This document shows, piece by piece, positions 1-53,460 of a stretch of DNA of 64,000 bases; positions within the stretch are counted from its first letter, which is position 1; each line of letters opens with the position of its first letter. Under the pieces are notes generated by a model. The model was not told where the DNA came from. It was given only the letters and a program-made list of their open reading frames with translations, and made no database searches. Made by a program: the position numbers and the translations under genes. Origin of the DNA: Bugula neritina (Eukaryota; Animalia; Bryozoa); assembly GCA_964035545.1 (NCBI GenBank), contig OZ037767.1:15008998-15072997 (forward strand), in the 5' to 3' direction.

Positions 1-1175
1 TTGAAGCAATCTCAGCATACTATCCACAGTTTGACCATCTTCAAATACTGCGTAAGCATATCCTACAAAAAGAAGTATTATTTTGCAATGAAGACTGTAA
101 AGTTTTTTCTTGCACCAGACTGGGTTTGGGGACTGCACTTCACCTGGGCTATAGGATTTGTGCCAGTTTCCTCTGCTGGTTTTTATTACCAACTCAACTT
201 CAAAGCTAGCTTGACTCAGCTGCATAGCTAACTACCGTTAGTTATTATAGCAAACAAGTAGACGAAAATTAGCTATCAGTATCTTATTAGGAACAGAACC
301 AAACGGTTTCAGGGTTGGTTAAATAAGAAAGGTTGGTCTGTTATATAAGAAAAATAAAGATGAAATATTATTAAGATATTATATTTGCTATCATACCAGA
401 TAATAAACCTTTGCTAGGTAGTTGAAGTTGGACTTTTCCAAATCTCTCCAATGCTAACTTTATTTCGTCTGAAATGTTTACATATAACAACAGTAATATT
501 ATTCATAACTAACATTAACTTTGGAGTTCACTCTCACAGCTAACCTATAAACTAGATTTACAGCTATTCTAAAGGACAACATTAAACAAGTAAACAGACC
601 TTTAGTCACATGCTTTGGTATTCCTCCAAGAAAAACTTTGCAAGAAAAACGTGGATTTTCGTTTTCATTTGGCATCTCACCTCGCCATTCGTGTGTTGCT
701 GTCAGAAATTCTACAAAAATATTTAGCAAATATTGAAGTATATTTAAGTTTATAGTGTCACAAAGCTAAAATAATACATAATGTTAATAGAAAACAAGAA
801 AATTTTGTTGTTGCCGATTATTAGACATATGAAACTACTGCTAGCTTACACTTGTCTTGAATAAATTGCTTTATATAACTTAAACAATAAACAGACTAAA
901 ACTATTATTACACTGCTATAATGAAATATAATATTTCCTGGAGTATGACTTAAAAGTTTCTATTAAAATAATTGTTTCTGTTGTCTTTGCAATAGAAAAT
1001 ATATTTCACAGGCAAATTCAGTAAAAACAAATGTGATTTCATTTTCAAATATTTGTTAAAACTTTCTCTAACTTTCTGAAGTTGTATATATATATACCAT
1101 ACAAAGTATATAATCTATATGCTCTAAAGTATTTAATATGTAACTTTATGTACTATACTGAGTCTTACCAGCCAT
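1..1175 (-). CDS. CPEB1: CPEB1/Orb-like RNA-binding protein, copy A (5' part; runs off the window start)
   Basis: Minus-strand exons 1175-1169 (ATGGCTG|gtaag), 710-600 (EFLTATHEWRGEMPNENENPRFSCKVFLGGIPKHVTK), 468-397 (DEIKLALERFGKVQLQLPSKGLLS) and 62-1 (GYAYAVFEDGQTVDSMLRLLQ...). Borders are GT-AG and phases are compatible. SCKVFLGG is the CPEB1 RRM1 RNP2 signature. Exon 1 is the least certain part. Confidence 0.85.
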
Positions 1176-1249
1176 ATTGTACTGTGATGGTGATTGAAGG
1201 ATCTGTTGGTAAACTCTGAGAGATGTATTCTTTGCTGTAAGAAGTCAAG

Positions 1250-1287
1250 AACTGAAGAGATCACCCAGAAGACCTCCATTATATATA
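1250..1287 (-). promoter_or_regulatory. Putative TATA box + initiator of CPEB-like copy A
   Basis: Minus-strand TATATATAA (1287-1279) lies about 30-34 nt upstream of TCAGTT (1255-1250, Inr-like TCAGTY). An ATG-free leader follows, then ACAATATGG with A at -3 and G at +4. Confidence 0.5.
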
Positions 1288-3456
1288 GGTACTGATCACC
1301 TCAATAGGGCAATTATCTCTTGGAGTCAAATCCTTAAGAACTCAATCACAACACCAGAACCAGTAATTAGAGGTACTCAGAGTAACAAAGAAAACTCATC
1401 TCTCAGGTTGGTAGGATTAAGAAAGTGTTACAAACACCAGAACCTGTAATTAGGGGTATCAAAAGAAGCTCATCTGAAAAAAGAGTTACAAATTTGCTAG
1501 AGGTAATAACACACTATACTGAGATCACTGAGTTTTGGGGTAATTTAATAATTGTAAAGACACTACAAATGGACAAACCTTTTCCACTAACACTTTTTGA
1601 CTTGAGGTTTACTTTTATTTTAGCTGATCTAACAAATATTTCCTTTACCTCTAAAGATATTTTTATGAAATGTATATTTTTGCTAAAGCCTGCTATAATG
1701 TTTTAGCTGATAATCGGTTTTTGCATGGTATAAAATAACTTTTATATACCACCTTGATTTTTCAAATATATATCTTAAATAATGTTATATAACTTTAAAA
1801 CTTCATAAATATAATCACAATTAACCAGCCATAAGGGTAACTAGAGTTTGTTAGAGCTATGAATTTTACCAAAATCTTATTGATCATGCAGATAAAAACA
1901 TTTATATAACCAATACCAAAGCATTGATTTATAAAAAAAAATACTGAGTCTGGCCGTTCTCGAGCTAACACAAAAGTAATCAAATATACTTGTAAAAGTT
2001 TTGGTTAAAGCTTGAAATAAGCTTTTATAATAATACATAAGTAAAAGGGTAACTAAAATTTTCAGCAGTTAGATATTATTTAACAGGTTAATTGAAAAAG
2101 CAAGCAAAGTGTTTTTAGAGTTCTCTGCAAGTTGTTTATGGTGTCTTACCCTGAGCTACTATCTCTAAATTAACTACAACATTTATAACAGAAGAAAGCA
2201 CAACAATAATGGCAAAATTTAGGACCGAGCTGTAACGAGTCCAAATTAATGAAAATTACTTTATATTTTGTATATGCTTAAAACTGATGCAAAGCAATTT
2301 TAGGCCAGTGTATTTTTATTCCTTTAGCTGATTTTAGCACGTTGCTCACTTTTAAATAGTCCAAATAGTATATATATACTACTTGCTTTGCCTGTTTTCT
2401 TCTCTTTGTAGACATTTCAATTATTTTGGCATAATTTGTCAAGTTTCTTCAGATTTATGGGTACTTGGCGCATAAATAAATTCCTTTGATCTAAATTAAC
2501 TTATTAACGTTGCATTTTTTATATTTCTTGTTTGGAAAAAAAAAAATTCCATAAAAAGTATTCATTAAAGACAATGTCTATTGTAATTTATTCCTGTTTT
2601 CCATCCCACACAATTTTGTGAAAATTGGAATACAATTCCATATAATATTAATAATTATTAACTGTTATTTTGAGTTTAGCAATCAATACAACAGCTATAT
2701 ATGTATATATAGGTATATTACTATAGTTATATATTGCACCAAAATAGAAATAGCATCTAACTGGGAAGTGTCTATATATCTGGGATGAAACTTTTTCAGA
2801 TAAATATAATGTATGAGTTTAACAAATAGTCTAGATTAATCTCACAGGAGATGAAGTTTTAGCATTAATTATCTTGAACATTTTGTACCAGAATTATAAT
2901 TATGTAATAAGATCTTCTTTCAAAGGACTCACTGTACCAGAGAAAAAGCTGTATAATTGCTGACCAATCAAAGAGGATTAAAAATTGAGAAACTCAGATA
3001 GCTAAAAATCAAAGGTTGTAATTAAAGAATTGCATAATAGAGTAGCTGTCATTAGCTGGTACTCATTCACTGAGTTTTGGGTACATGTGCGTGAGCTGAA
3101 CGTAAATATAACTCTTTCTTATTCAAACAAAACACATAAATAACTCTTTTTCATTAAACAAGAAGTAGGTTCATAAAGAGCAGTTTGAGGTGCATAGGTT
3201 GTCTTTAACATTCAAAGAATTATAGCCTATACAAAGAAGTAGTTCACTCTAGTTCTGTTTCTCTGGATAGTGATACGATACTGCATAAGACTTGTTGAGC
3301 AGCTCTGCTTGAGACAAACTGTTACTTTAGTTATTAAACCACTTAATGCAGATAAAATATACAGGGTGTGTGCTTTGACTAGTTCTACTCTAAAATGTCA
3401 GGATATAAAATTTCTTCTGACCAGAGTGTTTTATACATAATTTTTAATATCTAAAA

Positions 3457-5923: not shown

Positions 5924-6024
<101 letters not shown>

Positions 6025-7550: not shown

Positions 7551-10500
7551 TCAGTCTGTCTGTGTAGACACAGACCGGGTAGATTTCAGAGGATGCTTCC
7601 TAGCAACAGGTATGTGTTTTTGTTCACACAATAAGTGGCGGTCCAGCCAACAGCGTTCACAAAAATACTAAAACATGAAAAATACATTCATTGTACTTCA
7701 TAAACAAAATGAAGCCCGACCTTGAAAAAGAAAAGTTTTCACGAACATGCGAAGCTATATAACTTGAATATTTTTATATTTGCAAAATATGCTTAGCACA
7801 TGAAAAATAAAAGAAATCTTCAACCATTATCACTTTAGTAGGACTGGGTATGTATCAATTGTGTGGTAATAATTTAGAAGTATAAAGACATTGGCTATTG
7901 GGTATTTTACCTGAAAGCATGACGAGTGTTTACAGAAGTAGGGTCCCTCTCTCAACATACAATTACCACAGAGAGAATCTTTTACAATGTGAGGATTAAT
8001 CTGTATCTACAACACAATTTGCTCTGTTATAATCAGTATAGAAACAACCAACATAATATTGTTGCACCTTGAAATATTATACAAGAAATATTGTAGAACA
8101 TTCGAAATAAAATAGCAAACCATTGAATAAAGGATTGAAATTGTTGCAACATTGCCAAATTATTATAGTTAGTCAAAAGCTAATTAGAAAAAAATAAGGC
8201 TAAGCTAAATATATAACCAAGTTACTTGTCAAACTACCTGTTTTTGAAAGCCTATCGTATTAATAAATAGACATCCTTCCTCCACAGCCATTTTATAACT
8301 ATTTTTGCAAAGAAACTGCACTCGACCAGAACCTGAAATATTATCATATTTACTTTGCACCAGTAACACCATGTTACAGAGTAACACATCATTTTAATGT
8401 TTATTTAGATTATAGTGTATGTTTGCAAACTGCTTACATAGAAACTTTATGTAAATAACTGCAGTAGGTATATATTAAATTAACTTAAGTATGAGGGTCA
8501 GTCTTACCAATGGGGTATTTGTTTTTATCCGTGTCAATGCTTGCTGATATTACCCTCCCATAAACTTCTTTCATTATATTTGCCAACATGCTGGCCGTAA
8601 TCTTTCCATGTAATCCGCCTACAAATATGCTGTTCCCTTCTCCAATATTTTTTCTAGCCGTGAGATGAAAGTTATTATTTATATTCCAAGGAATTATCTC
8701 CACCTGGTAAACATTAAACTTTTCAAGTATATGGCATAGCCAATTATATAATTTATAAACAAAACTATGCATTACAACCACTACACACATTTCATGTAAG
8801 GACAAATAGAATGAATAACTGTTTATTCACCTTTTTACCCCTAATAGTAATTTTCCTTTCTCCATATTCTGATTGAAGCAATCTCAGCATACTATCCACA
8901 GTTTGACCATCTTCAAATACTGCGTAAGCATACCCTTCAAGTACAAAAAAAGTAATATTGTGCAATGAAGACTGTAAAGTTTTTTCTTGCACTAGTATGG
9001 GTTTGGGGACTGCACTTCACCTGGGCTATAGGATTTGTGCCAGTTTTCTCCACTGGTGTTTATTACCAACTCAACTTCAAATCTAGCTTGACTCAGATGT
9101 ATAGCTAACTAATTAGCAATCAGTATCTTACTAGGAACAGAACCAAAAGATTTCGCGGCTGGTTAAATAAGAAAGGTTGGTCTGTTATATAGGAAAAATA
9201 AAGATGAAATACAACCTTTGCGACTTTCTGGCCTAATAATTTACTCAACTGGCAGGACAAGAAGTGAAAACTTCATAGAGACCACATCTTAAATTGGATT
9301 TAGTGAGTACAATACAACTAATCTTCTTTTTGCAGATTGAATGCAGCTTAATAATTTCAAATTTTAACCACTGTGTTATTTCTAGTTGTAGTTGGGATAG
9401 TTATCAATGCTATTGCTATCTATAGCTATTATTGAGAGTAGAAAAGCTGATTGGGTTTGTTAGAAATATAGCCGCAATGAAGGTACGAAACAGGGAGGGG
9501 TGTAGTAACCTCTGCATAGTCATAGATCAGGGGTGGACAATTTCTTATCTTTGAGGACCAAGTTAAGAAGTCAAACAAAATTATAGTACACATAATAGAA
9601 CCTATGCTGATGGAGGTGCTAATCAGATTAGCAATGACACTGAAAAATGGGCAAAAGGGTCACAAGTGGCAATGGGACTCCCAGTTGTCCTCCTTTGCAG
9701 TAGATGAACAGTTAATTATATATATCTGAGATGTAAAAATGTTATCCTCACTGGGATTCAAACCCTACGCCTTTGACTAACCATTACACAAAGAGATTCC
9801 TAACAACATGATACTATTAAGATATTATATAAAGATGAAATACTATTAGGATATTATATTTGCTATCATACCAGATAATAAACCTTTGCTAGGTAGTTGA
9901 AGATGGACTTTTCCAAATCTCTCCAATGCTAACTTTATCTCGTCTGAAATGTTCACATATAACTATAATATCATTCATAACTAACATTAACTTTAGAATT
10001 CATTCTCACAGCTAACCTATAAACTAGATTCACTGCCATTTTAAAGGACAACATTAAACAATTAAACAGACCTTTAGTTACATGCTTTGGTATTCCTCCA
10101 AGAAAAACTTTGCAAGAATAACGTGGATTTTCGTTTTCAATTGGCATCTCACCTCGCCATTCGTGTGTTGCTGTCAGAAACTCTACAAAAATATTTGACA
10201 AATTAAATTAAACTTAAGTCTATAGAGTCACAAGGCTAAAATGATACATAATGGTAATAGAAAACAAGAAAACCTGGTTGTTTAGGATTATTAAACATAT
10301 GAAACTACTGTTTGCTGATACTTGTATTGAATATAAGCTGCTTTTTATAACTTAAACAATAAACAGACTGAAACTATTATTGCACTGCTATAATGAAATA
10401 TAATATTTTCTGGAGTATGACTTAAAAAGTTGCTATTAAAATTGTTTCTGTTGTCTTTGCAATAGAAAATATATTTCACAAGCAAATTCAGTAAAAACAA

Positions 10501-10638
10501 ATGTGATTCAATTTTAAATATTTGTTAAAACTTTCTTTAACTTTCTGAAGTTGTATATACCATACAAAGTATATAATCTATATGCTCTAAGGTATTTAAT
10601 ATGTAACTTTATGTACTATACTGAGTCTTACCAGCCAT
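7551..10638 (-). CDS. CPEB1: CPEB1/Orb-like protein (RRM1-RRM2-ZZ), copy B, 8 exons, about 265 aa
   Basis: Exons 10638-10632, 10182-10072, 9943-9872, 8934-8831, 8703-8508, 8332-8238, 8006-7911, 7667-7551 (TGA). All are GT-AG and phase-compatible, with no internal stop. Motifs: [49 protein letters not shown] (CPEB1-type, not the CPEB2-4 KYPKGAGR), and ZZ domain SLCGNC..PYFCKHSSCFQYFCERCWLDRH..H with 6 Cys + 2 His. Confidence 0.9.
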
Positions 10639-10712: not shown

Positions 10713-10750
10713 AACTGAAGAGATCTCCCAGAAGACCTCCATTATATATA
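10713..10750 (-). promoter_or_regulatory. Putative TATA + Inr, copy B
   Basis: Same motifs and spacing to the ATG as copy A. Confidence 0.5.
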
Positions 10751-13408: not shown

Positions 13409-16400
13409 TCAGTCTGTCTGTGTAGACACAGATCTGGTAGATTTCACAGGACGCTTCCTAGCAACAGGTATGTGTTTTTGTTCACACAATAAGTGACAGT
13501 CCAGCCAACAGCGTTCACAAAAGTACTGAAACATGGAAAATACATTCATTGTACTTCATAAACAAAATGAAGGCTGACCTTGAAAAAGAAAAGTATTCAT
13601 AGACATGAGACGCCATATAACTTAAATATTTCTATATTTGCAAAATATGCCTATACCACATGAAAAATAGAAGTAATCTTCAACCATTAGTACTTCAGTA
13701 AAACTGGATATGTATCAATTGTGTGGTAATAATTTAGAAGTATAAAGACATTGGCTACCGGGTATTTTACCTGAAAGCATGACGAGTGTTTACAGAAGAA
13801 GGGTCCCTCTCTCAACATACAATTACCACAGAGAGAATCTTTTACAATGTGCGGATTAATCTGTATCTACAACACAATTTGTACTGTTATAATCAGTATA
13901 GAAACAACCAACATAATATTGTTGCACCTTGAAATATTATACAAGAAATATTGTAGAACAATCAAAAAATAAAATAGCAAACCATTGAATAAAGGATTGA
14001 AATTGTTGCAACATTGCCAAATTATTACAGTTAGTCAAAAACTAATTAGAAACAATTACGGCTAAGCTGAATATATAACCAAGTTACTTGTCAAAATACC
14101 TGTTTTTGAAAGCCTATCGTATTAATAAATAGACATCCTTCCTCCACAGCCATTTTATAACTATTTTTGCATAGAAACTGCACTCGACCAGAACCTGAAA
14201 TATTATCATATTTACTTTGCACCAGTAACACCATGTTACAGAGTAACACATTATTTTAATGTTTATTTAGATTATAGTGTATGTTTGCAAGCTGCTTACA
14301 TATAAACTTTAGTAAATAACTACAGTAGGTATATATTAAATTAACTTAAGTATGAGGGTCAGTCTTACCAATTGGGTATTTGTTCTTATCCGTGTCTATG
14401 CTTGCTGATATTACCCTCCCATAAACTTCTTTCATTATTTTTGCCAACATGCTGGCCGTAATCTTTCCATGTAATCCGCCTACAAATATGCTGTTCCCTT
14501 CTCCAATATTTTTTCTAGCCGTGAGATGAAAGTTATTATTTATATCCCAAGGGATTATCTCCACCTGGTAAACATTAAACTTTTCAAGTATATGGCATAG
14601 TCATTATAATTTATAAACAAAACTATACATTACAACCACTACACACATTTCATGTAAGGACAAATAGAATAAACAACTGATTATTCACCTTTTTACCCCT
14701 AATAGTAATTTTCCTTTCTCCATATTCTGATTGAAGCAATCTCAGCATACTATCCACAGTTTGACCATCTTCAAATACTGCATAAGCATATCCTTCAAAA
14801 AGAAGTGATATTATGGAATGAACGATTGTAAAGTTTTTTCTTGCACCAGATTAGGCTTGGGGACTGCACTTCACCTGGGCTATAGGATTTGTGCCAGTTT
14901 CCTCTGCTGGTTTTTATTACTAACTCAACTTCAAAGCTAGCTTGACTCAGTTGTATAGCTAACTAATTAGCAATCAGTTTCTTACTAAGAACAGAACCGA
15001 TGAGTTTCACAGGTGGTTTAATAAGAAAGGTTGGTCTGTTATATAAGAAAAATAAAGATGAAATACAACCCTTGCAACTTTCTGGCTTAATTATTTACTC
15101 AACTGGCAGGACAAGAAGTGAAAATTTGTGCCCGGTTTCTCCACTCAACTTTAAAGCTAGCTTGACTCAGCTGTACTGCTAACTACCGTTAGTTATTATA
15201 GCAAGCAAGTAGAAGAAAATTAGCAATCAGTATCTTACTAGGAACAGAACCAAATGGTTTAACTGTTGGTTAAATAAGAAAGGTTGGTCTGTTATATAAG
15301 AAAAATAAAGATGAAAAACAACGGTTGCAACTTTCTAGCCTAATTATTAACTCAACTGGCAGGACAAGAAGTGAAAATTTCATAGAGACCATATCTTAAA
15401 TTGGATTCAGTGAGTACAATACAACTAAATTTTTTTTGCAGATTGAATGCAGCTTATTAATTTTAAATTTCAACCACAGCGTTCTTTCTGGTAGTAGTTG
15501 GGATAGTTATAAATACTATAGCTATAGCTATTAATGAAAGTAGAAAAGCTGATTGGGTTTATTAGAAATATAGCCGCATTGACGGTAAAAAAACATGGAG
15601 GGGTGTAAGTTCATAAATTTTATCAATTCTGCCCAGTCTACCAAAGAAGTTCAAAAACAACTAAACTTAAGTAGTAACTTCTGCATAGTTATAGATCAGG
15701 GGTGGGCAATTTCTTATCTTTGAGGACCAAATTAAAAAGTCAAATAAAATGATTGTACACATAATAGAACCTATGCTGATCGATGTGCTAATCAGAATAG
15801 CAATGACACTGAAAAATGGGCAAAGAGTCACAAGTGGCAATGGGACTCCCAGTTGCCCACCCCTGCTGTAGATGAACAGGTAATTATATATCTGAGATGT
15901 AAAAATGTTGTCCCCACTGGGATTCAAACCCTAGGCATTTCACTAACCATTACACAAAAAGATTCCTAACGACATGATACTATTAAGATAATATTATATT
16001 TGCTATCTTACCAGATAATAAACCTCTGCTAGGTAGTTGAAGTTGGACTTTTCCAAATATCTCCAATGCTAACTTTATCTCGTCTGAAATGTTTACATAT
16101 AACTATAATATTATTCATAACTAACATTAACTTTGGAATTTACTCTCACAGCTAACCTATAAACTAGATTTACAGCTATTCTAAAGGACAACGTTAAACA
16201 ATTAAACAGACCTTTAGTCACGTGCTTTGGTATTCCTCCAAGAAAAACTTTGCAAGAATAGCGGGGATTTTCGTTTTCAATTGGCATCTCACCTCGCCAT
16301 TCGTGTGTTGCTGTCAGAAATTCTACAAAAAATATTTGACAAATTAAATTAAACTTAAGTCTATAGTGCCACAAGGCTAAAATGATACATAATGTTAATA

Positions 16401-16784
16401 GAAAACAAGAAAACTTGATTGTTGCAGATTATTAGACGTATGAAACTATACTGTTAGCTTATATTGGTCTTGAATAAGCTGTTTTATGTAACTCTATGTA
16501 ACTAAAAAACAGACTAAAACTACTATTGCACTGCTATAATGAAATATAATATTTTCTGGAGTATGACTTAAAAAATTGCTATTAAAATTGTTTCTGTTGT
16601 CTTTGCAATGAAAATATATTTCACAAGCAAATTCAGTAAAAACAAATGTGATTTCATTTTCAAATCTCTGTTAAAACTTTCTTTAACTTTCTGAAGTTGT
16701 ATATATCATACAAAGTATATAATATATATGCTCTAAAGTATTTAATATGTAACTTTATGTACTATACTGAGTCTTACCAGCCAT
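13409..16784 (-). CDS. CPEB1: CPEB1/Orb-like protein, copy C, 8 exons
   Basis: Exons 16784-16778, 16322-16212, 16083-16012, 14792-14689, 14564-14369, 14194-14100, 13866-13771, 13525-13409. Exon lengths match copy B (7/111/72/104/196/95/96/117 nt) and the frame is open. Confidence 0.9.
15697..15865. mobile_element. hAT-like MITE in intron 3 of the CPEB-like gene
   Basis: Perfect 13-bp TIRs CAGGGGTGGGCAA / TTGCCCACCCCTG, with flanks TTATAGAT / CTGTAGAT (decayed 8-bp TSD). Paralogues lie at about 9528-9697, 25635-25799, 35080-35243 and 43733-43897, with a partial copy at 53070-53144. Absent from the shortened intron of copy A. Confidence 0.75.
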
Positions 16785-16858: not shown

Positions 16859-16896
16859 AACTGAAGAGATCACCCAGAAGACCTCCATAATATATA
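16859..16896 (-). promoter_or_regulatory. Putative TATA + Inr, copy C
   Basis: Same spacing as copy A; TATA variant TATATATTA. Confidence 0.45.
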
Positions 16897-21583: not shown

Positions 21584-22464
21584 CTGTTCCAAATACAAAA
21601 CAGGTGAGATAATAATACAGAGAAATTCATATTAATATTACATTTACATCAATATAATCATAGCAATACAGTACATGTTAAGATAACATCTACTATAGCT
21701 GTGTACACAAAATTGCTGCAAGTGAAGTGGGCAACAATGGTTTTTAGAATCAACATTGCGTTTTAGTTATTTACGTTAATCTTCAACAATCATTTTATAT
21801 TCATATGTTTGAATTGTTGTAGAAATATCTGATGAAATATATTAATCTATTATTTTAACTGTCTAATAAAATATTTTGTTAAAAAGCTTCATATTTTTAC
21901 ATGGTGAAAGCTTTATCATACGTTGCAATAAATTTTAGATATTATCTGCATGTTGTTCAAAGTAAATCAAGTAATTTGTGAAGTAGCAAAATTTTCTAGA
22001 AAGTGGTTTCAGTTAAAAAAAATTTGAAAATTTTCAATATGTAAGGAAATGTTCAATTAGAGATGTAAAGATTAAAAACTCATCAGCAATTACATGGCTA
22101 AATGATCTATAGCACTTTTTCTTATTTTATCCAGCATTTATTAAAAATCTCCCTTAAGACTCAAATATTTCGCACTATCTTTCGCAAGGAAGTATTTTGT
22201 AAGCTAGCAGGACTTCAGGCTGAGTATGGCGATGGCGTATCAGGCACAGTGAATCAAATTTATGATCAGTCTGAGCATGTGCAATTACCATTCTACTAAG
22301 AATCTATAGATTTACTTTTACTTTTAGTGCAACAAAAATTTGAAGTACCATACTAGAATGCTAGCATTTACGCTTTAATTTTTTGCTACTGGTTGTGGCA
22401 TTATGTTGGTAGTTCAACATATATATATACATATATGTATATACATGTATATATTATATATCTC

Positions 22465-22515
22465 AATCTGTGGACAGCAGCTGTTTCAGGATTTGTCCCT
22501 TCATCAGCACAGATC
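22465..22515 (-). ncRNA. Minimal type I hammerhead ribozyme (Penelope/retrozyme-like)
   Basis: Minus strand reads GAUCUGUG-CUGAUGA-AGGGACAAAUCCU-GAAA-CAG CUG CUG-UC-CACAGAUU. It has the full core (CUGAUGA, GAAA, GUC), stem I AUCUGUG/CACAGAU, stem II AGGG/UCCU and a short stem III ACAG/CUGU. Predicted cleavage is between 22473 and 22472. Confidence 0.8.
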
Positions 22516-23610
22516 AGAGTACCATGGCCCACACCTTCGCAATATACATTCCCATAATTATGTGGCTTCATAGAGGGCTGCTCATAGGGGCAGTGAAAAG
22601 TTTGTCTGAGTCAATATAATTATCATTGACTCAGTGAAATATTGTCAACACCTGATGGAAACAAATCATTAAATTTTCAATAATCACTGCATTTCCATGA
22701 ATGGGAATGAACCTGTACTGATGATGCCCATAGGGATTACATGGAAGGAAAGCCGCACGTTTTTATGCAATCTATACGAAGTTATCTTCTCTTCGTATAC
22801 ACCATATAATTTATGGTATAAATTGTTTATAGTTTATAGATTGTATTTTGTGTTATCTACACCATTTTTATCCTACAATCTGTACCCTATAGCAATTTAT
22901 CTCTCTACATATATTTTGCTTTGCTTTGAAAACTTTCTCATTCCCTTTATGGTATGTGTTGACATTTGTAAACTTGAAGCAGTAGCTACTATATACTAAA
23001 TTACTAACTTACAATAAATTCAAAACTCAAACTGTAAAATTTCTCTGCATGTAAGTTTTGGTAATGTGAAGTTTTCAAAGTGAAAACGAGGTATTTATAG
23101 TTTGTGAGGTTACTTTCTTTCTAAAGCTTGGTGGCTTAATAACCACTTGTGCTTCCTTTTTTGCGCATGAGTTTTAAGCAATAACAAATTATCTTATCTT
23201 GATTCATGTACAATTTCTCTGCATTTAACTTTTAGTAGTGTAAAGTAAAAATAAAGTATTTGAAGTCAACATCATATTGCCTTTTTCTTAATGCTTAGTG
23301 TTTAAAGGAAAAGACATACTAGATTTATAGCAAATAATTTATTCTAAAAGTACATGTTTATAAATACAATATTATTTGCTACCATCACTAACATAATATT
23401 TACAAATATACAAAGCAGCAAAACTTATCTATTACTGATAAAACGAAGCTTAAAAAGGTTTAATATAATTTGGCTAAAACTTTTGAAGTAAATTATAACA
23501 CAACTTGTTGGTTACAGGGAGGGGGGAGAGAGGGAGGAAGGAAAGGAGGGAGGGAGGGGCAAGTCTGTGAATAAATATAAAGCTAGTTGATGTGTTGATG
23601 CCGTGGATAT

Positions 23611-26600
23611 TCAGTCTGTCTGTGTAGACACAGACCGGGTAGATTTCACAGGATGCTTCCTAGCAACAGGTATGTGTTTTTGTTCACACAATAAGTGGCA
23701 GTCCATCCAACAGCGTTCACAAAAGTACTAAAACATGGAAAATACATTCATTGTACTTCATAGACAAAATGAAGGCTACCTTGAAAAAGAAAAGTTTTCC
23801 CATATAACTTGAATATTTCTATATTTGCAAAATATGCCTACCACATGAAAAATAGAAGAAATTTTCAACAATTAGCACTTTAGTAAGACTGGATATGTAT
23901 CTATTGTGTGGTAATAATTTAGAAGTATAAAGACATTGGCTATTGGGCATTTTACCTGAAAGCATGACGAGTGTTTACAGAAGTAGGGTCCCTCTCTCAG
24001 CATACAATTACCACAGAGAGATTCTTTTACAATGTGAGGATTAATCTGTATCTACAACACAATTTGCACTGTTATAATCAGTATAGAAACAACCAACATA
24101 ATATTGTTGCACCTTGAAATATTACACAAGAAATATTGTAGAACAATCAAAATAAAATAGCAAACCATTGAATAAAGAATTGAAATTGTTGCAATAGTTA
24201 GTCAAAAGTTAATTAGGAAAAATTACAGCTAAGCTAAATATATAGCCATTTCAAGTTACTTGTCAAACTACCTTTTTTTGAAAGCCTATCGTATTAATAA
24301 ATAGACATCCTTCCTCCACAGCCATTTTATAACTATTTTTGCATAGAAACTGCACTCGACCAGAACCTGAAATATTATCATATCTACTTTGCACCAGTAA
24401 CACCATGTTAAAGAGCAACACATTATTTTAATGTTTATTTAGATTATAGTGTATGTTTGCAAACTGCTTACATATAAACTTTATGTAAATAACTACAGTA
24501 GGTATATATTAAATTAACTTAAGTATGAGGGTCAGTCTCACCAATTGGGTATTTGTTTTTATCCGTGTCTATGCTTGCTGATATTACCCTCCCATAAACT
24601 TCTTTCATTAATTTTGCCAACATGCTGGCCGTAATCTTTCCATGTAATCCGCCTACAAATATGCTGTTCCCTTCTCCAATATTTTTTCTAGTTGTGAGAT
24701 GAAAGTTGTTATTTATATCCCAAGGAATTATCTCCACCTGGTAAACATTAAACTTTTCAAGTATATGGCATTATAATTTACAAACAAAACTGTACATTAC
24801 AACCACTGCACACCTTTTATGTAAGGACAAATAGAATAAATAATTGTTTATTCACCTTTTTACCTCTAATAGTAATTTTCCTTTCTCCATATTCTGATTG
24901 AAGCAATCTCAGCATACTATCCACAGTTTGACCATCTTCAAATACTGCGTAAGCATATCCTTCAAGTACAAAAAGAAGTGATATTGTACAATGGAGACTG
25001 TAAAGTTTTTTTTTGCACCATACTGGGCTTGGGGACTGCACTTCACCTGGGCTGAGATTTGTGCCAGTTTCCTCCACTGGTTTTTATTACTAACTAAACT
25101 TCAAAGCTAGCTTGACTCAGCTGTATAGCTAACTACCATTAGTTATTATAGCAAGCAAGTGGATGAAAATTAGCAATCAGTATCTTACTAGGAACAGAAC
25201 CAAAAGGTTTTACGGTGGGTTAAATAAGAAAGGTTGGTCTGTTATATAAGAAAAATAAAGATGAAATACTTTTTGGCCTAATAATTTACTCAACTGGCAG
25301 AATGGGAAATGAAATTTTCATAGAGACCATATCTCAAATTGGATTCAGTGAGTGCAATACAACTAAACTTTTTTGTAGATTGAATGCAGCTTATTAATTT
25401 TAAATTTCAACTACAGCGTTCTTTCTGGTAGTAGTTGGGATAGTTATAAATACTATTGCTATCTAGCTATTATTGAAAGTAGAAAAGCTGATTGGGTTTA
25501 TTAGAAATATAGCCGCATTGAAGGTACGAAACATGGAGGGGTGCAATTTCATAAATTTTATCAATTCTGCCCAGTCCACCAAAGAAGTTCAAAAACAACT
25601 AAACTTAAGTAGTAACTTCTGCATAGTTATAGATCAGGGGCGGGCAATTTCTTATCTTTGAGGACCAAGTTAAGAAGTTAACCTAAATGATTGTACACAC
25701 AATAGAACTTATGCTGCCGTGCTAATCAGAATAGCAATGACCCTGAAAAATGGGCAAAGGGTCACAAGTGGCAATGGGGCTTCCAGTTGCCCTCTCTTGC
25801 AGTATATGAATAGACAAGTATATATATCTGAGATGTAAAAATGTTGTCCCCACTGGGATTCAAACCCTAGGCTTTTGACTAACCATTACACAAAGAGATT
25901 CCCAACAACATGATACTATTAAGATATTGTATCTTACCAGATAATAAACCTTTGCTAGGCAGTTGAAGTTGGACTTTTCCAAATCTCTTCAATGCTAACT
26001 TTATCTCATCTGAAATGTTTACATATAACAACAGTAATATTATTCATAACTAACATTAACTTTGGAATTCACTTTCACAGCTAACCTACAAACTAGATTT
26101 ACAGCTATTTCAAAGGACAAAATTAAACAATTAAACAGACCTTTAGTCACCTGCTTTGGTATTCCTCCAAGAAAAACTTTGCAAGAATAACGTGGATTTT
26201 GGTTTTCAATTGGCATCTCACCTCGCCATTCGTGTGTTGCTGTCAGAAATTCTACAAAAATATTTGACAAATTAAATTAAAGTTAAGTTTATAGTGTCAC
26301 AAGGCTAAAATGATGCATAATGTTTATGGAAAACAAGAAAACCTTGTTGTTGCCGATTATTAAACATATGAAACTACTGCTAGCTTACACTTGTCTTGAA
26401 TGAGCTGCTTTATATATATCTTAAATAAAAAAACAGACTAAAACTATCATTGCACTGCTATAATGAAATATAATATTTTCTGGAGTATGACTTAAAAAAG
26501 TTGCTATTAAAATTGTTTCTGTTGTCTATGCAATAGAAAATATATTTCACAAGCAAATTCAGTAAAAACAAACTATGTGATTTCATTTTCAAATATTTGT

Positions 26601-26713
26601 TAAAACTTTCTTTAACTTTCTGAAGTTGTATATACCATACAAAGTATATAATCTATATGCTCTAAAGTATTTAATATGTAACTTTATGTACTATACTGAG
26701 TCTTACCAGCCAT
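23611..26713 (-). CDS. CPEB1: CPEB1/Orb-like protein, copy D, 8 exons
   Basis: Exons 26713-26707, 26251-26141, 26009-25938, 24959-24856, 24737-24542, 24366-24272, 24051-23956, 23727-23611. Exon lengths and splice sites are conserved and the frame is open. Confidence 0.9.
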
Positions 26714-26787: not shown

Positions 26788-26825
26788 AACTGAAGAGACC
26801 TCCCAGAAGACCTCCATTATATATA
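26788..26825 (-). promoter_or_regulatory. Putative TATA + Inr, copy D
   Basis: Same motifs and spacing as copy A. Confidence 0.5.
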
Positions 26826-29800: not shown

Positions 29801-30379
29801 CATTAAGGTCTTGGAAGAGTCTACATTCATAATATTTCACCTAAAACTTAGAATAACTAGTATTAGCAGCGATATTTAAGGCACATGAAAGTAGATTTTT
29901 AAACTAAAGGAGTTGTGTTTTCATGGCTCTACAGCACAGATGGAAACTACACATGAGAAGAGAGAACAACTCCCAGCCATAAACTATGACTGCGTTTTCA
30001 GCATGTTTTGCATAAGAAGTGTAACTCTACATGTACATACATATTATAGACACTGTTTATTTTATATGCAAAGACCAGGCATTTCTTTACATATTTGTAT
30101 ATAATCAACTTATACAATGTGACTAGCAAAAAGAAACACTGTCCAAACAAATAATAAAATATGTTATAGTATAAACATAGATTCATTATTGAAAAATAAA
30201 CAAAGATAAAAAGTAGAATTTGAAAAAAAACATTTAACAGGATATACAGACTAGTAGTATATTATCAAATTTTAATATTTAGCTTTGGCAAAATAAAGTA
30301 AATATAAAGGATAGGTGTTGAATATGATGTAAATGGTAAAAACCATAACAGATGTCAAAGTGAATCTGGAATCCAGGAT

Positions 30380-30800
30380 AGAGGAATGGTATGAGTCATT
30401 GACACAGACTAGAAGGTGATGTAGGAATGGTATAACACACTGACACACACTAGCAGGTGATGTAGGAATGGTATGACACACCAGCAGGTAAAAGAGAAAT
30501 GGTATGACACACTGACACAGACTAGCAGGTGGTGGAGGAATGGTATGACACACCGACACACACCAGCAGGTAATGTAGGAATGATATGACACACTGACAC
30601 ACACCGGCAGGTGAGAGAGGAATGGTATGACACACTGACACACACTAGCAGGTGATAGAGAGGAATGGTATGACACACTGACACAGACTAGCAGGTGATG
30701 TAGGAATGGTATGACACACTGACACACACTAGCAGGTGAAAGAGAAGAATGGTATGACACACTGACACACATCAGCAGGTGATAGAGATGAATGGTAGTA
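30380..30800. repeat. Minisatellite of about 41 bp (AGGAATGGTATGACACACTGACACACACTAGCAGGTGATGT), about 10 units
   Basis: Tandem units read directly from the sequence. They explain the repetitive ORFs 30272-30805 and 30409-30684. Confidence 0.95.
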
Positions 30801-33245: not shown

Positions 33246-36162
33246 TCAGTCTGTCTGTGTAGACACAGATCTGGTAGATTTCAGAGGACGCTTCCTAGCA
33301 ACAGGTATGTGTTTTTGTTCACACAATAAGTGGCAGTCCAGCCAACAGCGTTCACAAAAGTACTAAAACATGAAAAATACACTCATTGTACTTCATAAAC
33401 AAAATAAAGGCTGACCTTGAAAAGGACATGTGAAGCCATATGACGTAAATATATTCATATTTGCAAAATATGCCTACTATGTGAAAAATAGAAGAAATCT
33501 TCAACCATTAGCACTTTAGTAAGACTGGCTATGTATCTATTGTGTGGTAATAATTCAGAAGTATAAAGACATTGGCTATTGGGCATTTTACCTCAAAGCA
33601 TGACGAATGTTTACAGAAGTAAGGTCCCTCTCTCAACATACAATTACCACAGAGAGAATCTTTTACAATGTGAGGATTAATCTGTATCTACAACACAATT
33701 TGCACTTGAAATATTTTACAAGAAATATTGTAGAGCAATAAAAATAAAAATAGCAAACTATTGAATAAAGGATTGAAATTATTGCAACATTGCCAAATTA
33801 TTATAGTTAGTCAAAAGCTAATTAGAAAAATTACGGCTAAGCTAAATATACAGCCAAGTTACTTGTCAAACTACCTTTTTTTGAAAGCCTATCGTGTTAA
33901 TAAATAGACATCCTTCCTCCACAGCCATTTTATAACTATTTTTGCATAGAAACTGCACTCGACCAGAACCTGAAATATTATCATATTTACTTTGCACCAG
34001 TAACACCACGTTACAGAGTAACACATTATTTTAATGTTTATTTAGATTATAGTGTATATGTTTGCAAACTGCTTACATATAAACTTTATGTAAATAACTA
34101 CAGGAGGTATATATTAAATTGACTTAAGTATGAGGGTCAGTCTTACCAATTGGGTATTTGTTTTTATCAGTGTCGATGCTCGCTGATATTACCCTCCCAT
34201 AAACTTCTTTCATTATTTTTGCCAACATGCTGGCCGTAATCTTTCCATGTAATCCGCCTACAAATATGCTGTTCCCTTCTCCAATATTTTTTCTAGTTGT
34301 GAGATGAAAGTTATTATTTATATCCCAAGGAATTATCTCCACCTGGTAAACATTAAACTTTTCAAGTATATGGCATAGTCATTATAATTTATAAACACAA
34401 CTATACATTACAACCACTACACACATTTCATGTAAGGACAAATAGAATAAATAACTGTTTATTCACCTTTTTACCCCTAATAGTAATTTTCCTTTCTCCA
34501 TATTCTGATTGAAGCAATCTCAACATACTACCCACAGTCTGACCATCTTCAAATACTGCGTAAGCATATCCTTCAAGTACAAAAAGAAATAATATTGTGC
34601 AAAAAAAGACTGTAAAGTGTTTTCTTGCACCAGACTGGATTTGGGGACTGCACTTCACCTGGGCTAAAGTTGCCTTTATATAGCTTCGCGATTTTCGGTT
34701 AGAATTTCAATTTGGCCGGGTTGAAAATTCTCCGGGTTGCATTGCATTGTAAAAGCCACTCGTAGAAATTTTTATACTGTGATAACTTAATCGGCCAATT
34801 TTAGAATATAGGAGTAATAACTCCTTGTAAACATCGTTATTTAGTTATTACTTTGGCGATTAGACAACGTACTCTGGTAGTAGTTGGGATAGCTATAAAT
34901 AATATAGCTATTATTGAAAGTAGAAAAGCTGATTGGGTTTATTAGAAATATAGCCGCATTGACGGTACGAAACATGGAGGGGTGTAATTTCATAAATTTT
35001 TATCAATTCTGCCCAGTCTACCAGAGAAGTTCAAAAACAACTAAATTTAAGTAGTAACTTCTGCATATAAAGTATAGATCAGGGGTGGGCAATTTCTTAT
35101 CGTTGAGGACCAAGTTAAGAAGTCAAACAAAGTGATTGCATGCACACATAATAGAACCTATGCTGATCGGGGTGCTAATCAGAATAGCAATGAAACTGAA
35201 AAAGGTCACAAGTGGCAATTGGGCTCCCAGTTGCCCACCCCTGCTGTAGATGAAAAATTAATTATAATATTATATATTTGAGATGTGAAAATGTTGTCCT
35301 CACTGGGATTCAAACTCTAGGCGTTTGACTAACCATTACACAAAGAGATTCCTAACAACATGATACTATTAAGATATTATATTTGCTATCTTACCAGATA
35401 ATAAACCTTTGCTAGGTAGTTGAAGTTGGACTTTTCCAAATCTCTCCAATGCTAACTTTATCTCATCTGAAATGTTTACATATAACAATAATAATGTTAT
35501 TCATAACTAACATTAACTTCGAAATTCACTCTCACAGCTAACCTATAAACTAGATTTACAGCTATTTTAAAAGACAACATTAAACAATTAAACAGACCTT
35601 TAGTTACATGCTTTGGTATTCCTCCAAGAAAAACTTTGCAAGAAAAACGTGGATTTTCGTTTTCAATTGGCATCTCACCTCGCCATTCGTGTGTTGCTGT
35701 CAGAAATTCTACAAAAATATTTGACAAATTAAATTAAACTTAAGTCTATAGTGTCACAAGGCCAAAATGATACATAATGTTGATGGAAAACAAGAAAACC
35801 TGGTTGTAGTGGATTATTAGACATATGAAACTACTGCTAGCTTACACTTGTTTTAAATGAGCTGCTTTATATAAATTAAACAAAAAACAGACTAAAACTA
35901 TTATTGCACTGCTATAATGAAATATAATATTTTCTGGAGTATGACTTAAAAAGTTGCTATTAAAATTGTTTCTGTTGTCTTTGCAATAGAAAATATATTT
36001 CACAAGCAAATTCAGTAAAAACAAATGTGATTTCAATTTTAAATATTTGTTAAACTTTCTTTAACTTTCTGAAGTTACATATACCATACAAAGTATATAA
36101 TCTATATACTCTAAAGTATTTAATATGTAACTTTATGTACTATACTGAGTCTTACCAGCCAT
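33246..36162 (-). CDS. CPEB1: CPEB1/Orb-like protein, copy E, 8 exons
   Basis: Exons 36162-36156, 35708-35598, 35466-35395, 34570-34467, 34342-34147, 33969-33875, 33687-33592, 33362-33246. Exon lengths are conserved and the frame is open. Confidence 0.9.
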
Positions 36163-36236: not shown

Positions 36237-36274
36237 AACTGAAGAGATCTCCCAGAAGACCTCCATTATATATA
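36237..36274 (-). promoter_or_regulatory. Putative TATA + Inr, copy E
   Basis: Same motifs and spacing as copy A. Confidence 0.5.
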
Positions 36275-39276: not shown

Positions 39277-39445
39277 GAGGAATGGTATGACACATTGACA
39301 CACACTAGCAGGTGATGTAGGAATGGTATGACACACTGACACACTCTAGCAGGTGATGTATGAATGGTATGACAAACTAGCAGGTGATGTAGGAATGGTA
39401 TGACACACTGACACACACCAGCAGGTGATAAAAATAAATGGTAGT
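39277..39445. repeat. Same minisatellite, about 4 units
   Basis: Paralogous site in the E-F spacer. The A-B spacer has one unit at about 4856-4895. Confidence 0.9.
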
Positions 39446-40584: not shown

Positions 40585-40587
<3 letters not shown>

Positions 40588-42017: not shown

Positions 42018-44819
42018 TCAGTCTGTCTGTGTAGACACAGATCTGGTAGATTTCACAGGACGCTTCCTAGCAACAGGTATGTGTTTTTGTTCACACAATA
42101 AGTGACAGTCCAACCAACAGCTTTCACAAAAGTACTAAAACATGGAAAATACATTCATTGTACTTCATAAACAAAATGAAGGCAGACCTCGGAAAAGAAA
42201 GGTTTTCACGAACATGAGAAGCCATATAACTTAAGTATTTCTATATTTGCAAAATATGCCTACCACATGAAAATTAGAAGAAATCCTCAACCATTAGCAC
42301 CTTAGTAAGACTGGTTATGTATCAATTGTGTGGTAATAATTTAGAAGTATAAAGATTGGCTATTGGGCATTTTACCTGAAAGCATGACGAGTGTTTACAG
42401 AAGTAGGGTCCCTCTCTCAACATACAATTACCACAGAGAGAATCTTTTACAATGTGAGGATTAATCTGTATCTACAACACAATTTGCACTGTTATAATCA
42501 GTATAGAAACAACCGACATAATATTGTTGCACCTTGAAATATTATACAAACAAGAAATATTGTGGAACAATCAAAATAAAAATAGCAAACCATTGAATCA
42601 AGGATTGAAATTATTATAGTTAATCAAAAGCTAATTAGAAAAAATTACGGCAAAGCTAAATATATAGCCATTTCAAGTTACTTGTCAAACTACCTTTTTT
42701 TGAAAGCCTATCGTATTAATAAATAGACATCCTTCTTCCACAGCCATTTTATAACTATTTTTGCATAGAAACTGTACTCGACCAGAACCTGAAATATTAT
42801 CATATTTACTTTGTACCAGTAACACCATGTTACAGAGTAACACATTATTTTAATGTTTATTTAGATTATAGTGTATGTTTGCAAATTGCTTACATAGAAA
42901 CTTTATGTAAATAACTACAGTAGGTATATATTAAATTAACTTAAGTATGAGGGTCAGTCTTACCAATTGGGTATTTGTTATTATCCGTTTCTATGCTTGC
43001 TGAAATTACCCTCCCATAAACTTCTTTCATTATTTTTGCCAACATGCTGGCCGTAATCTTTCCATGTAATCCGCCTACAAATATGCTGTTCCCTTCTCCA
43101 ATTATTTTTCTAGTCGCGAGATGAAAGTTATTATTTATATCCCAAGGGATTATCTCCACCTGGTAAACATTATTTTTTTCAAGTATATGACATAGTCATT
43201 ATAATTTACAAACAAAAGTATACATGACAACCACTACACACATTTCATGTAAGGACAAATAGAATAAATAACTGTTTATTCACCTTTTTACGCCTAATAG
43301 TAATTTTCCTTTCTCCATATTCTGATTGAAGCAATCTCAGCATACTATCCACAGGTTGACCATCTTCAAATACTGCGTAAGCATATCCTTCAAGTACAAA
43401 AAGTGATATTGTGCAATGAAAGACTGTAAAGTGTTTTCTTGCACCAGACTGGGCTTGGGGACTGCATTTCACCTGAGCTATAGGGTTTCTCCACTCAACT
43501 TCAAAGCTAGCTTGACTCAAACCAAGCAAACTTTTTTTTGCAGATTGAATGCAGCTTATTTATTTTAAATTTCAACCACAGCGTTCTTTCTGGTAGTAGT
43601 TGGGATAGTTATAAATACTATAGCTATAGCTATTTATGAGAGGAGAAAAGCTGATTGGGTTTATTAGAAATATAGCCGCATTGAAGGTACAAAACAGGGA
43701 GAGGTGTAGTATCCTCTGCATAGTCATAGATCAGGGGTGGGCAATTTCTCATCTTTGAGGACCAAGTTAAGAAGTCAAACAAAATGATTGTACACATAAT
43801 AGAACCTATGCTGACCTGCTAATCAGAATAGCAATGACACTGAAAAATGGGCAAAGGGTCACAATTAGTAATGGGGCTTCCAGTTACCCACCCTTGCAGT
43901 AGATGAACAGGTAATTATATATATATTTGAGATGTAAAAATATTATCCCCACTGGGATTCAAACCCTAGGCGTTTGACTAACTATTACATACAAAAAGAT
44001 TCCTAACAACATGATACTATTAAGATATTATATTTGCTATCTTACCAGATAATAAACCTTTGCTAGGCAGTTGAAGTTGGACTTTTCCAAATCTCTTCAA
44101 TGCTAACTTCATCTCATCTGAAATGTTCACATATAACAACAGTAATATTATTCATAACTAACATTAACTCCAAAATTCACTCTCACAGCTAACCTATAAA
44201 CTAAATTTACAGCTATTTTAAAAGACAACATTAAACAATTAAACAGACCTTTAGTCACATGCTTTGGTATTCCTCCAAGAAAAACTTTGCAAGAATAACG
44301 TGGATTTTGGTTTTCAATTGGCATCTCACCTCGCCATTCGTGTGTTGCTGTCAGAAATTCTACAAAAATATTTGACAAATTAAATTAAACTTAAGTTTAT
44401 AGTGTCACAAAGCTAAAATGATACATAATGTTAATAGAAAACAAGAAAACCTAGTTGTTACGGATTATTAGACGTATGAAACTACTGCTAGCTTACACTT
44501 GTCTTGAATGAGCTGCTTTATATAACTTAAACAAAAAACAGACTAAAACTATTATTGCACTGCTATAATGAAATATAATATTTCCTGGAGTATGACTTAA
44601 AAAAGTTGCCATTAGAATTGTTTCTGTTGTCTTTGCATTAGAAAATATATTTCACAAGCAAATTCAGTAAAAACAAATGTGATTTCATTTTCAAATATTT
44701 GTTGAAACTTTTTTTAACTTTCTGAAGTTGTATATATATACCATACAAAGTATATAATCTATATGCTCTAAAGTATTTAATATGTAACTTTATGTACTAT
44801 ACTGAGTCTTACCAGCCAT
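42018..44819 (-). CDS. CPEB1: CPEB1/Orb-like protein, copy F, 8 exons
   Basis: Exons 44819-44813, 44359-44249, 44117-44046, 43387-43284, 43159-42964, 42788-42694, 42471-42376, 42134-42018. The frame is open. This copy has several private substitutions (QPVDS, IRRKK, IETDNNKYP, CESCW). Confidence 0.88.
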
Positions 44820-44893
44820 ATTGTACTGTGATGGTGATTGAAGGATCTGTTGGTAAACTCTGAGAGATGTATTCTTTGCTGTAAGAAATCAAG

Positions 44894-44931
44894 AACTGAA
44901 GAGATCTCCCAGAAGACCTCCATTATATATA
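44894..44931 (-). promoter_or_regulatory. Putative TATA + Inr, copy F
   Basis: Same motifs and spacing as copy A. Confidence 0.5.
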
Positions 44932-50946: not shown

Positions 50947-51372
50947 CTGGTAAAAATTTTGCTTATATTAAAAAGAACTATTTTATTAGCATTCTACAAA
51001 GTCTTTTAAATTAAAAAGCAATAGTTGTTTAATGGTTCTGATGTTTATTATTTTACTGTTTAATCTAAATTTTTACCATAGTTAATTCAAATAGCTTACA
51101 TACACTGTTTCACCATAACCACTTTTTAGAAAAGTCTTGTTGGCTCATAAAAAATTTTCAAATTATACTATAAGTTAAAATTAATGGTATTGTTTTGATT
51201 TCATTAAAATTAAAACAATGTTCCTAGGAATAAAATGAAAAAATTTATGCACTGATTAAAGCATTGTATTTTTTTTATTTTAGAGCGACAGAAAAACTCC
51301 AAAGTGTTGGTGGTTCATTCAGTTTATCACTAGTATATATTGAATTAACTTGAGTATGAGGGACAGTCTTAC

Positions 51373-51530
51373 GAATAGGATATTTATTTTTATCTGTGTC
51401 AATGCTTGCGGTTATTACAGTCCCGTAAACATCTTTCATTATTTTAGCCAACATGCTGGCCGTAATCTTTCGATGCAGCTGAAATATTGAATATTGAAGA
51501 GTTAATTACATTCCAATAAGTTATCTCCAC
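51373..51530 (-). pseudogene. Diverged CPEB exon-5 (RRM2) relic
   Basis: Reads tttaccag|VEITYWNV...[35 protein letters not shown]|gtaag. An internal deletion/frameshift removes SIFVGG. It is more diverged than copies A-G are from each other. Confidence 0.85.
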
Positions 51531-52364
51531 CTGGTAAACAATAAAGTTGGTAGGGAGGACCTAAACAAATGCCAACTTCTGCTGCAACTAAAACTTTTCT
51601 AAATTAAAGTGTATACTTCTTTCTAGGAGGCAGCTTCTTGATATATTAAATTGAAATATATTATCATGCAGTCTTTGGATCAAATTTTGTGTATTAGTGT
51701 CGAGAGTTCTCTTTGCATTAAAAAGGCTTTAATATACTTATCAGTAAAGCAGTACTTAGTCTTTATATTTAAATGTGTCTACTTCAAGCAAGATGATCTT
51801 TGAGTTTTGCTGCACACAGTGAAGAGTTATCTTCTCAAGATTCCGCCTTATAATAAAGGGTGGTGGAGGTATGTTAAATTTTCTCCATATCAGAGTATAC
51901 CTCTTTTTAGAGTCTAGAATCAAAAAATATAGTATTATGCAAATTTATATATTGTATTTTGTGTTATCTACACTATTTTCATCCTAGAATCTGTACTCTA
52001 GCCATTTATCTCTCTACATGTATTTTGCTTTGTTTTGAAAACTTTCTCATTCCCTTTATGGTATGTGTTGACATTTGTAAACTTGAAGCAGTAGTTACTA
52101 TATACTAAATTACTAACTTACAATAAATTCAAAGCTCAAACTGTAAATTTTCTTTGCATGTAAGTTTTAGTAATGTGAAGTTTTCAAAGTGAAAATGAGG
52201 TATTTGTAGTTTGTGAAGTTACTTTCTTTCTAAAGCTTGGTGGCTTGATAACCACTGGTGCTGCCTTTATTGTGTTTTGAGCAATACGAAGTTATCTTAT
52301 CTTGATTCACGTACAATTTCTCTGCATGTAACTTTTAGTAGTATAAAGTTTTCAAAGTAAGAAT

Positions 52365-53460
52365 AAAGTATTTGAAGTCAACATCATATTGCCTTTTTCT
52401 TAATGCTTAGTGTTTAAAGGAAAAGACACATTTGATTTCAATTTATAGCAAATAATTTATTCTAAAAGTACATGTTTATAAATACAATATTATTTGCTAC
52501 CATCACTAACATAATATTATTTACAGATTACAATTAGCAGCAAAACTCATCTGTTACTGATAAAAAAGAAGCCTAAAAAGGTTTAACATCATTTGGCTAA
52601 AACTTGTGAATTAAATTGTAACACAACGTGTTGTTTACAGAAAAGAAGGATATTACCCTCCCATAAACTTCTTTCATTATTTTTGCCAACATGCTGGCCG
52701 TAATCTTTCCATGTAATCCGCCTACAAATATGCTGTTCCCTTCTCCAATTTTTTTTCTAGTTGTGAGATGAAAGTTATTATTTATATCCCAAGGGATTAT
52801 CTCCACCTGGTAAACATTAAACTTTTCAAGTATATGGCATAGTCATTATAATTTTATAAACAAAACTATACATTACAACCACTACACACATTTCATGTAA
52901 GGACAAATAGAATAAATAACTGTTTATTCACCTTTTTACCCCTAATAGTAATTTTCCTTTCCCCACATTCTGATTGAAGCAATCTCAACATACTATATTC
53001 ACAGTTTGACCATCTTCAAATACTGCGTAAGCATATCCTTCAAGTACAAAAAGAAGTAATATTGTGCAATGGCAATAGCAATGACACTGAAAAATTGGGC
53101 AAAAGGTCACAAGTGGCAATGGGACTCCCAGTTGTCCACTCCTGCAGCAGATGAACAGGTAATTATATATATCTAAGATGTAAAAATGTTGTCCCCACTA
53201 GGATTTAAACCCTAGGGGTAATACTAACCATTACACAAAGAGATTCCTAACAACATGATACTATTAAGATATTATATCTTACCAGATAATAAACCTCTGC
53301 TAGGTAGTTGAAGTTGCACTTTTCCAAATCTCTCCAATGCTAACTTTATCTCGCCTGAAATGTTCACATATAACTATAATAATATTATTCATAACTAACA
53401 TTAAATTTGGAATTCACTCTCACAGCTAACCTATAAACTAGATTTACAGCTATTTCAAAA
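52365..53460 (-). pseudogene. Truncated CPEB1-like pseudogene, copy G
   Basis: Exon 3 (53354-53283) is intact. Exon 4 (53037-52932) is 106 nt instead of 104, a 2-nt frameshift. Exon 5 (from 52806) breaks at about 52650 and joins directly to 3'UTR sequence, so exons 6-8 are deleted. Homology ends in intron 2 at about 53460, so exons 1-2 are absent. Confidence 0.9.

Follow-up and report, generated by a model that had tools for sequence, protein, structure and literature searches.

The 64000-nt window analysed in the present study (C3:15008998-15072997 of a 216-Mb assembly; AT-rich, with approx. 30% G+C) carries on its minus strand a tandem array of genes related to CPEB1, the Orb-type branch of the RNA-binding CPEB family. 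The array is real and consists of seven units, six of them intact and one broken. We consider it probable that the intact units are functional CPEB1 paralogues reduced to the RNA-binding module, which would descend from a 5'-truncated founder, would act as constitutive binders of the cytoplasmic polyadenylation element (CPE) and would be present in many copies for reasons of dosage.

Self-BLAST of the window resolved positions 1-53461 into head-to-tail repeats of a 6.1-9.9 kb unit with 83-97% identity, and minus-strand stop-free frames recur in each unit. Copy C was read base by base as the reference model and its exons were then mapped on to the remaining units, which for copy A required the addition of 10 kb of left flank (L001), more than half of this gene being located left of window base 1. 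This gave six complete eight-exon gene models (A-F), each with a coding sequence of 798 nt and 265 codons, a frame that is open in 6/6 copies, exons of 7, 111, 72, 104, 196, 95, 96 and 117 nt in all six, and canonical GT-AG splice sites at 84 of 84 positions (14 per copy). The original prediction, made from the letters of the window, had placed minus-strand ATGs at 1175, 10638, 16784, 26713, 36162 and 44819, and exon mapping returned exactly these positions. The equal exon lengths and open frames that it claimed for copies B-F are found there, and likewise in copy A, which is intact once the flank is joined; intron 3, said to range from 334 bp in copy A to approx. 1.2 kb in copy C, measures 334 and 1219 nt respectively. 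At the left edge, array homology stops approx. 3.5 kb before window base 1, and the whole array, including the 5' piece of the broken copy G beyond the window end, spans approx. 82 kb. As the copies are homologous over kilobases, chance resemblance is excluded. The six gene models are given below in window positions.

1-1175, minus strand: 5' portion of copy A; exon 1 1175-1169, exon 2 710-600, exon 3 468-397, exon 4 (initial 62 nt) 62-1; the remainder of exon 4, together with exons 5-8, falls in the left flank (L001); TATA box 1280-1287
7551-10638, minus strand: copy B, complete; exons 10638-10632, 10182-10072, 9943-9872, 8934-8831, 8703-8508, 8332-8238, 8006-7911 and 7667-7551; TATA box 10743-10750; AATAAA 7306-7311
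13409-16784, minus strand: copy C, complete; exons 16784-16778, 16322-16212, 16083-16012, 14792-14689, 14564-14369, 14194-14100, 13866-13771 and 13525-13409; TATA box 16889-16896; AATAAA 13166-13171
23611-26713, minus strand: copy D, complete; exons 26713-26707, 26251-26141, 26009-25938, 24959-24856, 24737-24542, 24366-24272, 24051-23956 and 23727-23611; TATA box 26818-26825; AATAAA 23338-23343
33246-36162, minus strand: copy E, complete; exons 36162-36156, 35708-35598, 35466-35395, 34570-34467, 34342-34147, 33969-33875, 33687-33592 and 33362-33246; TATA box 36267-36274; AATAAA 32995-33000
42018-44819, minus strand: copy F, complete and the most diverged; exons 44819-44813, 44359-44249, 44117-44046, 43387-43284, 43159-42964, 42788-42694, 42471-42376 and 42134-42018; TATA box 44924-44931; AATAAA 41773-41778

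The model was searched exon by exon against Pfam and solved structures, and the joined 265-residue sequence was used for translation, for the ratio of non-synonymous to synonymous divergence (dN/dS), for alignment and for the tree. Exon 2 matched residues 3-31 of human CPEB1 (2mkk) with an E value of 8e-6 and 29 bits, compared with 15 bits for CPEB4, and exon 5 matched residues 105-176 of the same structure, i.e. the second RNA-recognition motif (RRM2), with an E value of 2e-14 and 57 bits, compared with 8e-8 and 36 bits for CPEB4. Exon 7 matched the CPEB1 ZZ domain (2m13; E value 3e-5). In Pfam, exon 7 scored 34 bits against CEBP_ZZ (cut-off 29.8) and exon 8 scored 21.5 bits, and exons 2 and 4 gave partial RRM_7 matches, each of which falls singly below the cut-off because introns split the domain. 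The structure matches of exons 2 and 7 and the CEBP_ZZ match of exon 8 were obtained with copy C, and copy B likewise gave Pfam and PDB matches by exon. These data bear out, exon by exon, the CPEB1/Orb identity first assigned to the genes. The match of exon 2 to the first residues of 2mkk shows a CPEB-type first RRM (RRM1) that follows the conserved W-x-G-x-(L/M)-P motif, and alignment with full-length CPEB1 proteins revealed the RRM2 signature VQVIPW ... IDTDK.KYPIGSGRV and RNP motifs in register with those of the reference CPEB1s. All eight ligands of the ZZ finger (six Cys and two His) are kept in 6/6 copies.

Two CPEB-type RRMs followed by a ZZ finger of this kind place the array proteins with the CPEB1/Orb subfamily, from whose full-length members they differ in size (265 amino acids compared with approx. 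560-730) and in their high divergence, RRM1 having lost the PWDITE motif and one loop segment. Only eight codons separate the ATG from the conserved Trp that precedes RRM1, and the long N-terminal regulatory region typical of CPEB1 is absent from the array genes. In addition, comparison with the N-terminal exons of canonical CPEB1 and of another CPEB1 subfamily of this genome (type II, described below) found no N-terminal-like open reading frame (ORF) within the array or the 20 kb flanking it on each side. The predicted product is an RNA-binding module only (RRM1, RRM2 and ZZ finger), 265 amino acids in length, and as such is a truncated CPEB1 paralogue and not a canonical CPEB1. Its C-terminal STQTD residues, encoded by the last exon (e.g. 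window 13412-13435), are invariant in 6/6 copies. We also considered the 282-amino-acid CPEB1 of Trichoplax as a natural short form, but this looks like an incomplete annotation, the protein of a sister strain having 427 amino acids.

Comparison of the copies with one another revealed the mode of their evolution. The mean pairwise dS of 0.094 is close to the intron distance of 0.093, and the mean dN is 0.019, giving a dN/dS of approx. 0.2, with the highest values (0.20-0.40) in pairs that include copy F. At minimum, 37 synonymous and 30 non-synonymous changes are needed across the six copies, when 79% would be expected to be non-synonymous (p = 6.7e-10), and the variable sites are distributed 18/8/39 over codon positions 1/2/3. 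Indel events number 70 in 2705 intron columns and 0 in 798 exon columns, where 21 would be expected (P approx. 1e-9). These three independent measures clearly show that purifying selection has acted on the protein in every copy since the amplification, in agreement with the earlier suggestion that the exons are under constraint.

A TATA box is found exactly 112 nt before the ATG in 6/6 copies, and an AATAAA lies 237-267 nt after the stop in all six (237 nt in copy C), with the homology common to all copies ending approx. 95 nt downstream of it. The stretch that begins at the TATA box and ends 47 nt past the ATG varies less than the coding exons do: the six copies differ in only 7 of its 161 alignment columns. 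This promoter block occurs seven times genome-wide, all within the array, and the possibility that it is a dispersed element was rejected on that ground. The coding part of exon 1 is only 7 nt long (ATG GCT G) and is predicted to be spliced to exon 2 in phase 1 at the ancestral acceptor; a further ATG upstream overlaps the TATA box and should for this reason precede the transcription start. A plus-strand ORF of 93 amino acids upstream of each ATG was rejected as non-coding, with codon-position variation of 27/25/30, stops and frameshifts in copies C and E, and no Pfam match, and the other spacer ORFs match no Pfam family. Several units also carry in their spacers a 41-nt minisatellite of 4-10 copies (30377-30797, 39278-39429 and window-equivalent 77950-78500 in L017), which generates spurious long minus-strand ORFs.

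Within the gene segments that align well, pairs of copies are 4.5-6.5% apart. The 5' half and the 3' half each gave a star-like tree, in which no internal branch exceeds 0.005 and no two copies pair consistently, and different pairs of units have different classes of spacer in common. Star-like trees together with mosaic spacer classes indicate a short burst of unequal exchanges. A phylogeny with CPEB1 and CPEB2-4 had been proposed as a check with the original prediction. In our protein tree, which combined the six copies with 60 CPEB1s of other animals and took the CPEB2 of this genome as its root, the copies form one clade within CPEB1, with a crown of less than 0.06 and a stem of 2.7 changes per column, compared with 0.77 for type II. 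This placement and the bit scores of exons 2 and 5 both put the copies closer to CPEB1 than to CPEB2-4. An exhaustive search of 1.84 billion cluster representatives gave a best protein identity to exon 5 of no more than 52%, a word-index query of proteins, made with the longest stretch without stops, returned nothing, and close copies were found in the genome only within this array. Taken with the star-like, recent burst, these results fit the lineage-specific expansion that had been proposed.

The genome contains other CPEB genes, as follows.

C1 near 7.767 Mb: CPEB2/Orb2 type, one gene
C2 near 5.429 Mb: canonical-looking CPEB1
C3:15.14-15.76 Mb (L002-L010): type II CPEB1 subfamily, approx. 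nine loci, starting 75 kb beyond the array
C3 near 32.32 Mb: divergent CPEB1-like gene

The canonical CPEB1 that had been sought elsewhere in the genome is thus present, on C2, and is nearest to mollusc sequences. Two of the type II loci (L002 and L009) are complete genes, which encode proteins 99% identical with each other and have Ser/Pro-rich N-terminal ORFs upstream; the remainder are approx. seven 3' fragments, of which two have a ZZ exon interrupted by a stop, and they are scattered across the same 0.75 Mb as the array. Among the genome's own paralogues, the array protein is by identity nearest to type II (39%), and the two groups have in common their chromosome region, a tendency to partial duplication and the phase-1 intron before RRM1. 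In contrast with the array genes, the complete type II genes have N-terminal ORFs and lack an intron inside the first RRM1 exon. This phase-1 intron, which lies eight codons ahead of the conserved Trp, is common to the array genes, type II and canonical CPEB1, which makes a 5'-truncated duplicate the simplest origin for the array genes.

We therefore propose the following ancestry: a full-length CPEB1 paralogue of the same chromosome region would have been duplicated without its 5' part, and this founder would have kept the ancestral acceptor, acquired both a 7-nt coding first exon and a new promoter, undergone strong divergence, and then multiplied through unequal crossing-over. In the translation of maternal mRNAs CPEB1 serves as a master switch, and the N-terminal half of the protein carries the phosphorylation switch, degradation signals and partner sites. 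The array product would bind U-rich CPE-like elements of 3' untranslated regions and, as the N-terminal half is missing, would be a constitutive, non-switchable binder, i.e. a repressor, competitor or tether of CPE-containing mRNAs; the multiple gene copies would supply dosage, with germ cells or early embryos as the likeliest setting. We infer this role as a CPE-site binder, and the dosage role in the germline, from the architecture of the genes. Engineered CPEB1 constructs reduced to the RNA-binding domain serve as dominant negatives, and they resemble the array proteins in having RRM1, RRM2 and the zinc finger without the N-terminal half, a likeness that suggests competition for CPE sites. 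These constructs are, however, laboratory-made, whereas the array is a natural, selected, multi-copy gene.

Several points weigh against this proposal. The stem of the array clade is very long, and the tree does not fix the parent paralogue or the exact place of the clade inside CPEB1. The losses in RRM1 may mean that the RNA target is no longer the CPE. Both transcription and the exon 1-exon 2 junction are predictions from the DNA, and the copy number rests on one assembly. A different reading, which we consider unlikely but worth stating, is that the module has been re-targeted, the proteins being functional but no longer recognizing CPEs and having another task, for example binding a different motif or working mainly through the ZZ finger and the STQTD tail. 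The length of the stem beside that of type II, an identity of only 40-52% to any CPEB1, the altered and shortened RRM1 and the invariance of the C-terminal tail would all suit such a change; the aromatic positions of RNP1 and RNP2, the GSGRV motif and the eight zinc ligands, on the other hand, have all been kept, and CPEB1 is the best solved relative of each exon searched.

The remaining explanations fit the data less well than a set of functional, truncated genes. Because full-length paralogues join their N-terminal exons at the ancestral phase-1 site, which is also the acceptor of exon 2, the units might be 3' cassettes of one large gene, with far-upstream N-terminal exons spliced into exon 2 of varying units to give full-length isoforms. 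We regard this as improbable: each unit comes with a conserved TATA box, an ATG exon with a donor and an AATAAA of its own, nothing resembling an N-terminal exon lies within reach of the searches described above, and it is the broken unit that lies furthest upstream. It is also quite improbable that the copies are non-functional and that gene conversion maintains their likeness, with the open frames as a by-product, even though the block of promoter and exon 1 and also intron 5 are conserved as much as the exons, as conversion could bring about, and the units, with their different classes of spacer, are mosaics. Conversion is blind to codon position and to the distinction between synonymous and non-synonymous sites, yet both are strongly skewed, and it would not leave introns rich in indels beside exons without any; conversion alone is thus insufficient, and copy G shows what decay looks like at this locus. 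An assembly artefact, in which haplotypes or reads were wrongly set side by side, is very improbable indeed. A single assembly does underlie the array, but the copies are 4.5-6.5% apart in the gene and far more in the spacers, and the units differ in length, in many private indels and in spacer class; a haplotype duplication predicts two near-identical copies rather than seven diverged ones, and no second copy of the array was found on another contig.

The original prediction also spoke of pseudogenes in the plural. Broken sequence is indeed present, but it amounts to one broken seventh copy and a scrap of exon 5, which are listed here with the insertion that splits the former.

51374-51475, minus strand: isolated exon-5 scrap, 86% identity to copy C and more decayed than copy G
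52649-53461, minus strand: copy G, 3' piece of the pseudogene; remainder of intron 2, exon 3 53353-53283, exon 4 53037-52932, exon 5 nt 1-158 52806-52649
53462-64000, no strand assigned: first half of the insertion in copy G intron 2, flanked by an 8-nt duplication (approx. CTTTTRAA); its far end, window-equivalent 73893, is beyond the window

Exon 4 of copy G has a 2-nt insertion, and exons 6-8 are missing because of a deletion that runs from mid-way through exon 5 (after nt 158) past the stop. Its intron 2 is split by a 20432-bp insertion, whose breakpoint is position 53460, the coordinate at which the array had first been taken to end; the 5' piece of the copy, comprising spacer, TATA box, exon 1 and exon 2, is located at window-equivalent 73894-78900, approx. 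10 kb past the window end (L017). Within the insertion, the plus strand of 61000-63500 holds several ORFs of 80-120 amino acids, one with a YVDD-like motif reminiscent of reverse transcriptase; these ORFs have no significant Pfam family.

Three further observations concern the surroundings of the array and the assembly. On the minus strand, positions 22461-22541 hold a CUGAUGA ... GAAAC core as in the hammerhead ribozyme; the Rfam hammerhead models gave no match at the gathering score in the whole window or at E values up to 1 in 22200-22800. The nearest recognizable gene left of the array encodes a WH1 domain (Pfam E value 8.5e-8) followed by proline-rich ORFs, on the plus strand approx. 14 kb left of the window (L019:5903-6328). 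Mitochondrial COX1 (contig C321) reads TGA as Trp. A COX1 without TGA stops at C17:12213-13505 probably belongs to a bacterial contig in the assembly, and a copy nearly as good as the mitochondrial one, with 9 TGA codons, on a chromosome-sized contig (C6:11174072-11175412) suggests a recent nuclear insertion of mitochondrial DNA.

One CPEB1 gene per animal had been taken as the usual state, and this holds in so far as CPEB1 is most often a single gene in animals, but the ctenophores Mnemiopsis, Hormiphora and Beroe have six CPEB1 genes and a single CPEB2, four of the Mnemiopsis CPEB1 genes having consecutive identifiers (ML05853a to ML05856a) (PMC10284499). The ctenophore expansion and the present array are alike in being lineage-specific multiplications of CPEB1 alongside a single CPEB2. 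The former, however, is old and common to three lineages, whereas the array is a recent burst of near-identical copies in a protostome, probably a spiralian, as judged from the mitochondrial code and the nearest CPEB1 relatives; in addition, the ctenophore copies are not described as truncated (PMC10284499), whereas the array copies are. CPEB1 expansion is thus already known as a kind, and a recent array of truncated, selected copies is new.

Selection maintains six copies of a version of CPEB1 without its regulatory half, beside a region full of full-length and fragmentary paralogues. More speculatively, and we would hold it to be doubtful, the array genes may encode natural 'decoy' CPEBs, the bulk product of six genes holding CPE sites unswitchably and so setting or antagonizing what the full-length CPEB1 paralogues do in oocytes or sperm, in which case a dosage race, or genetic conflict within the germline, might lie behind the burst. 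If the genes are expressed, they would constitute a natural experiment on an RNA-binding module acting alone, and on a partial duplicate that gained a promoter and a first exon, became a new gene and was then amplified, and they would represent a second, independent expansion of CPEB1 besides that of the ctenophores.

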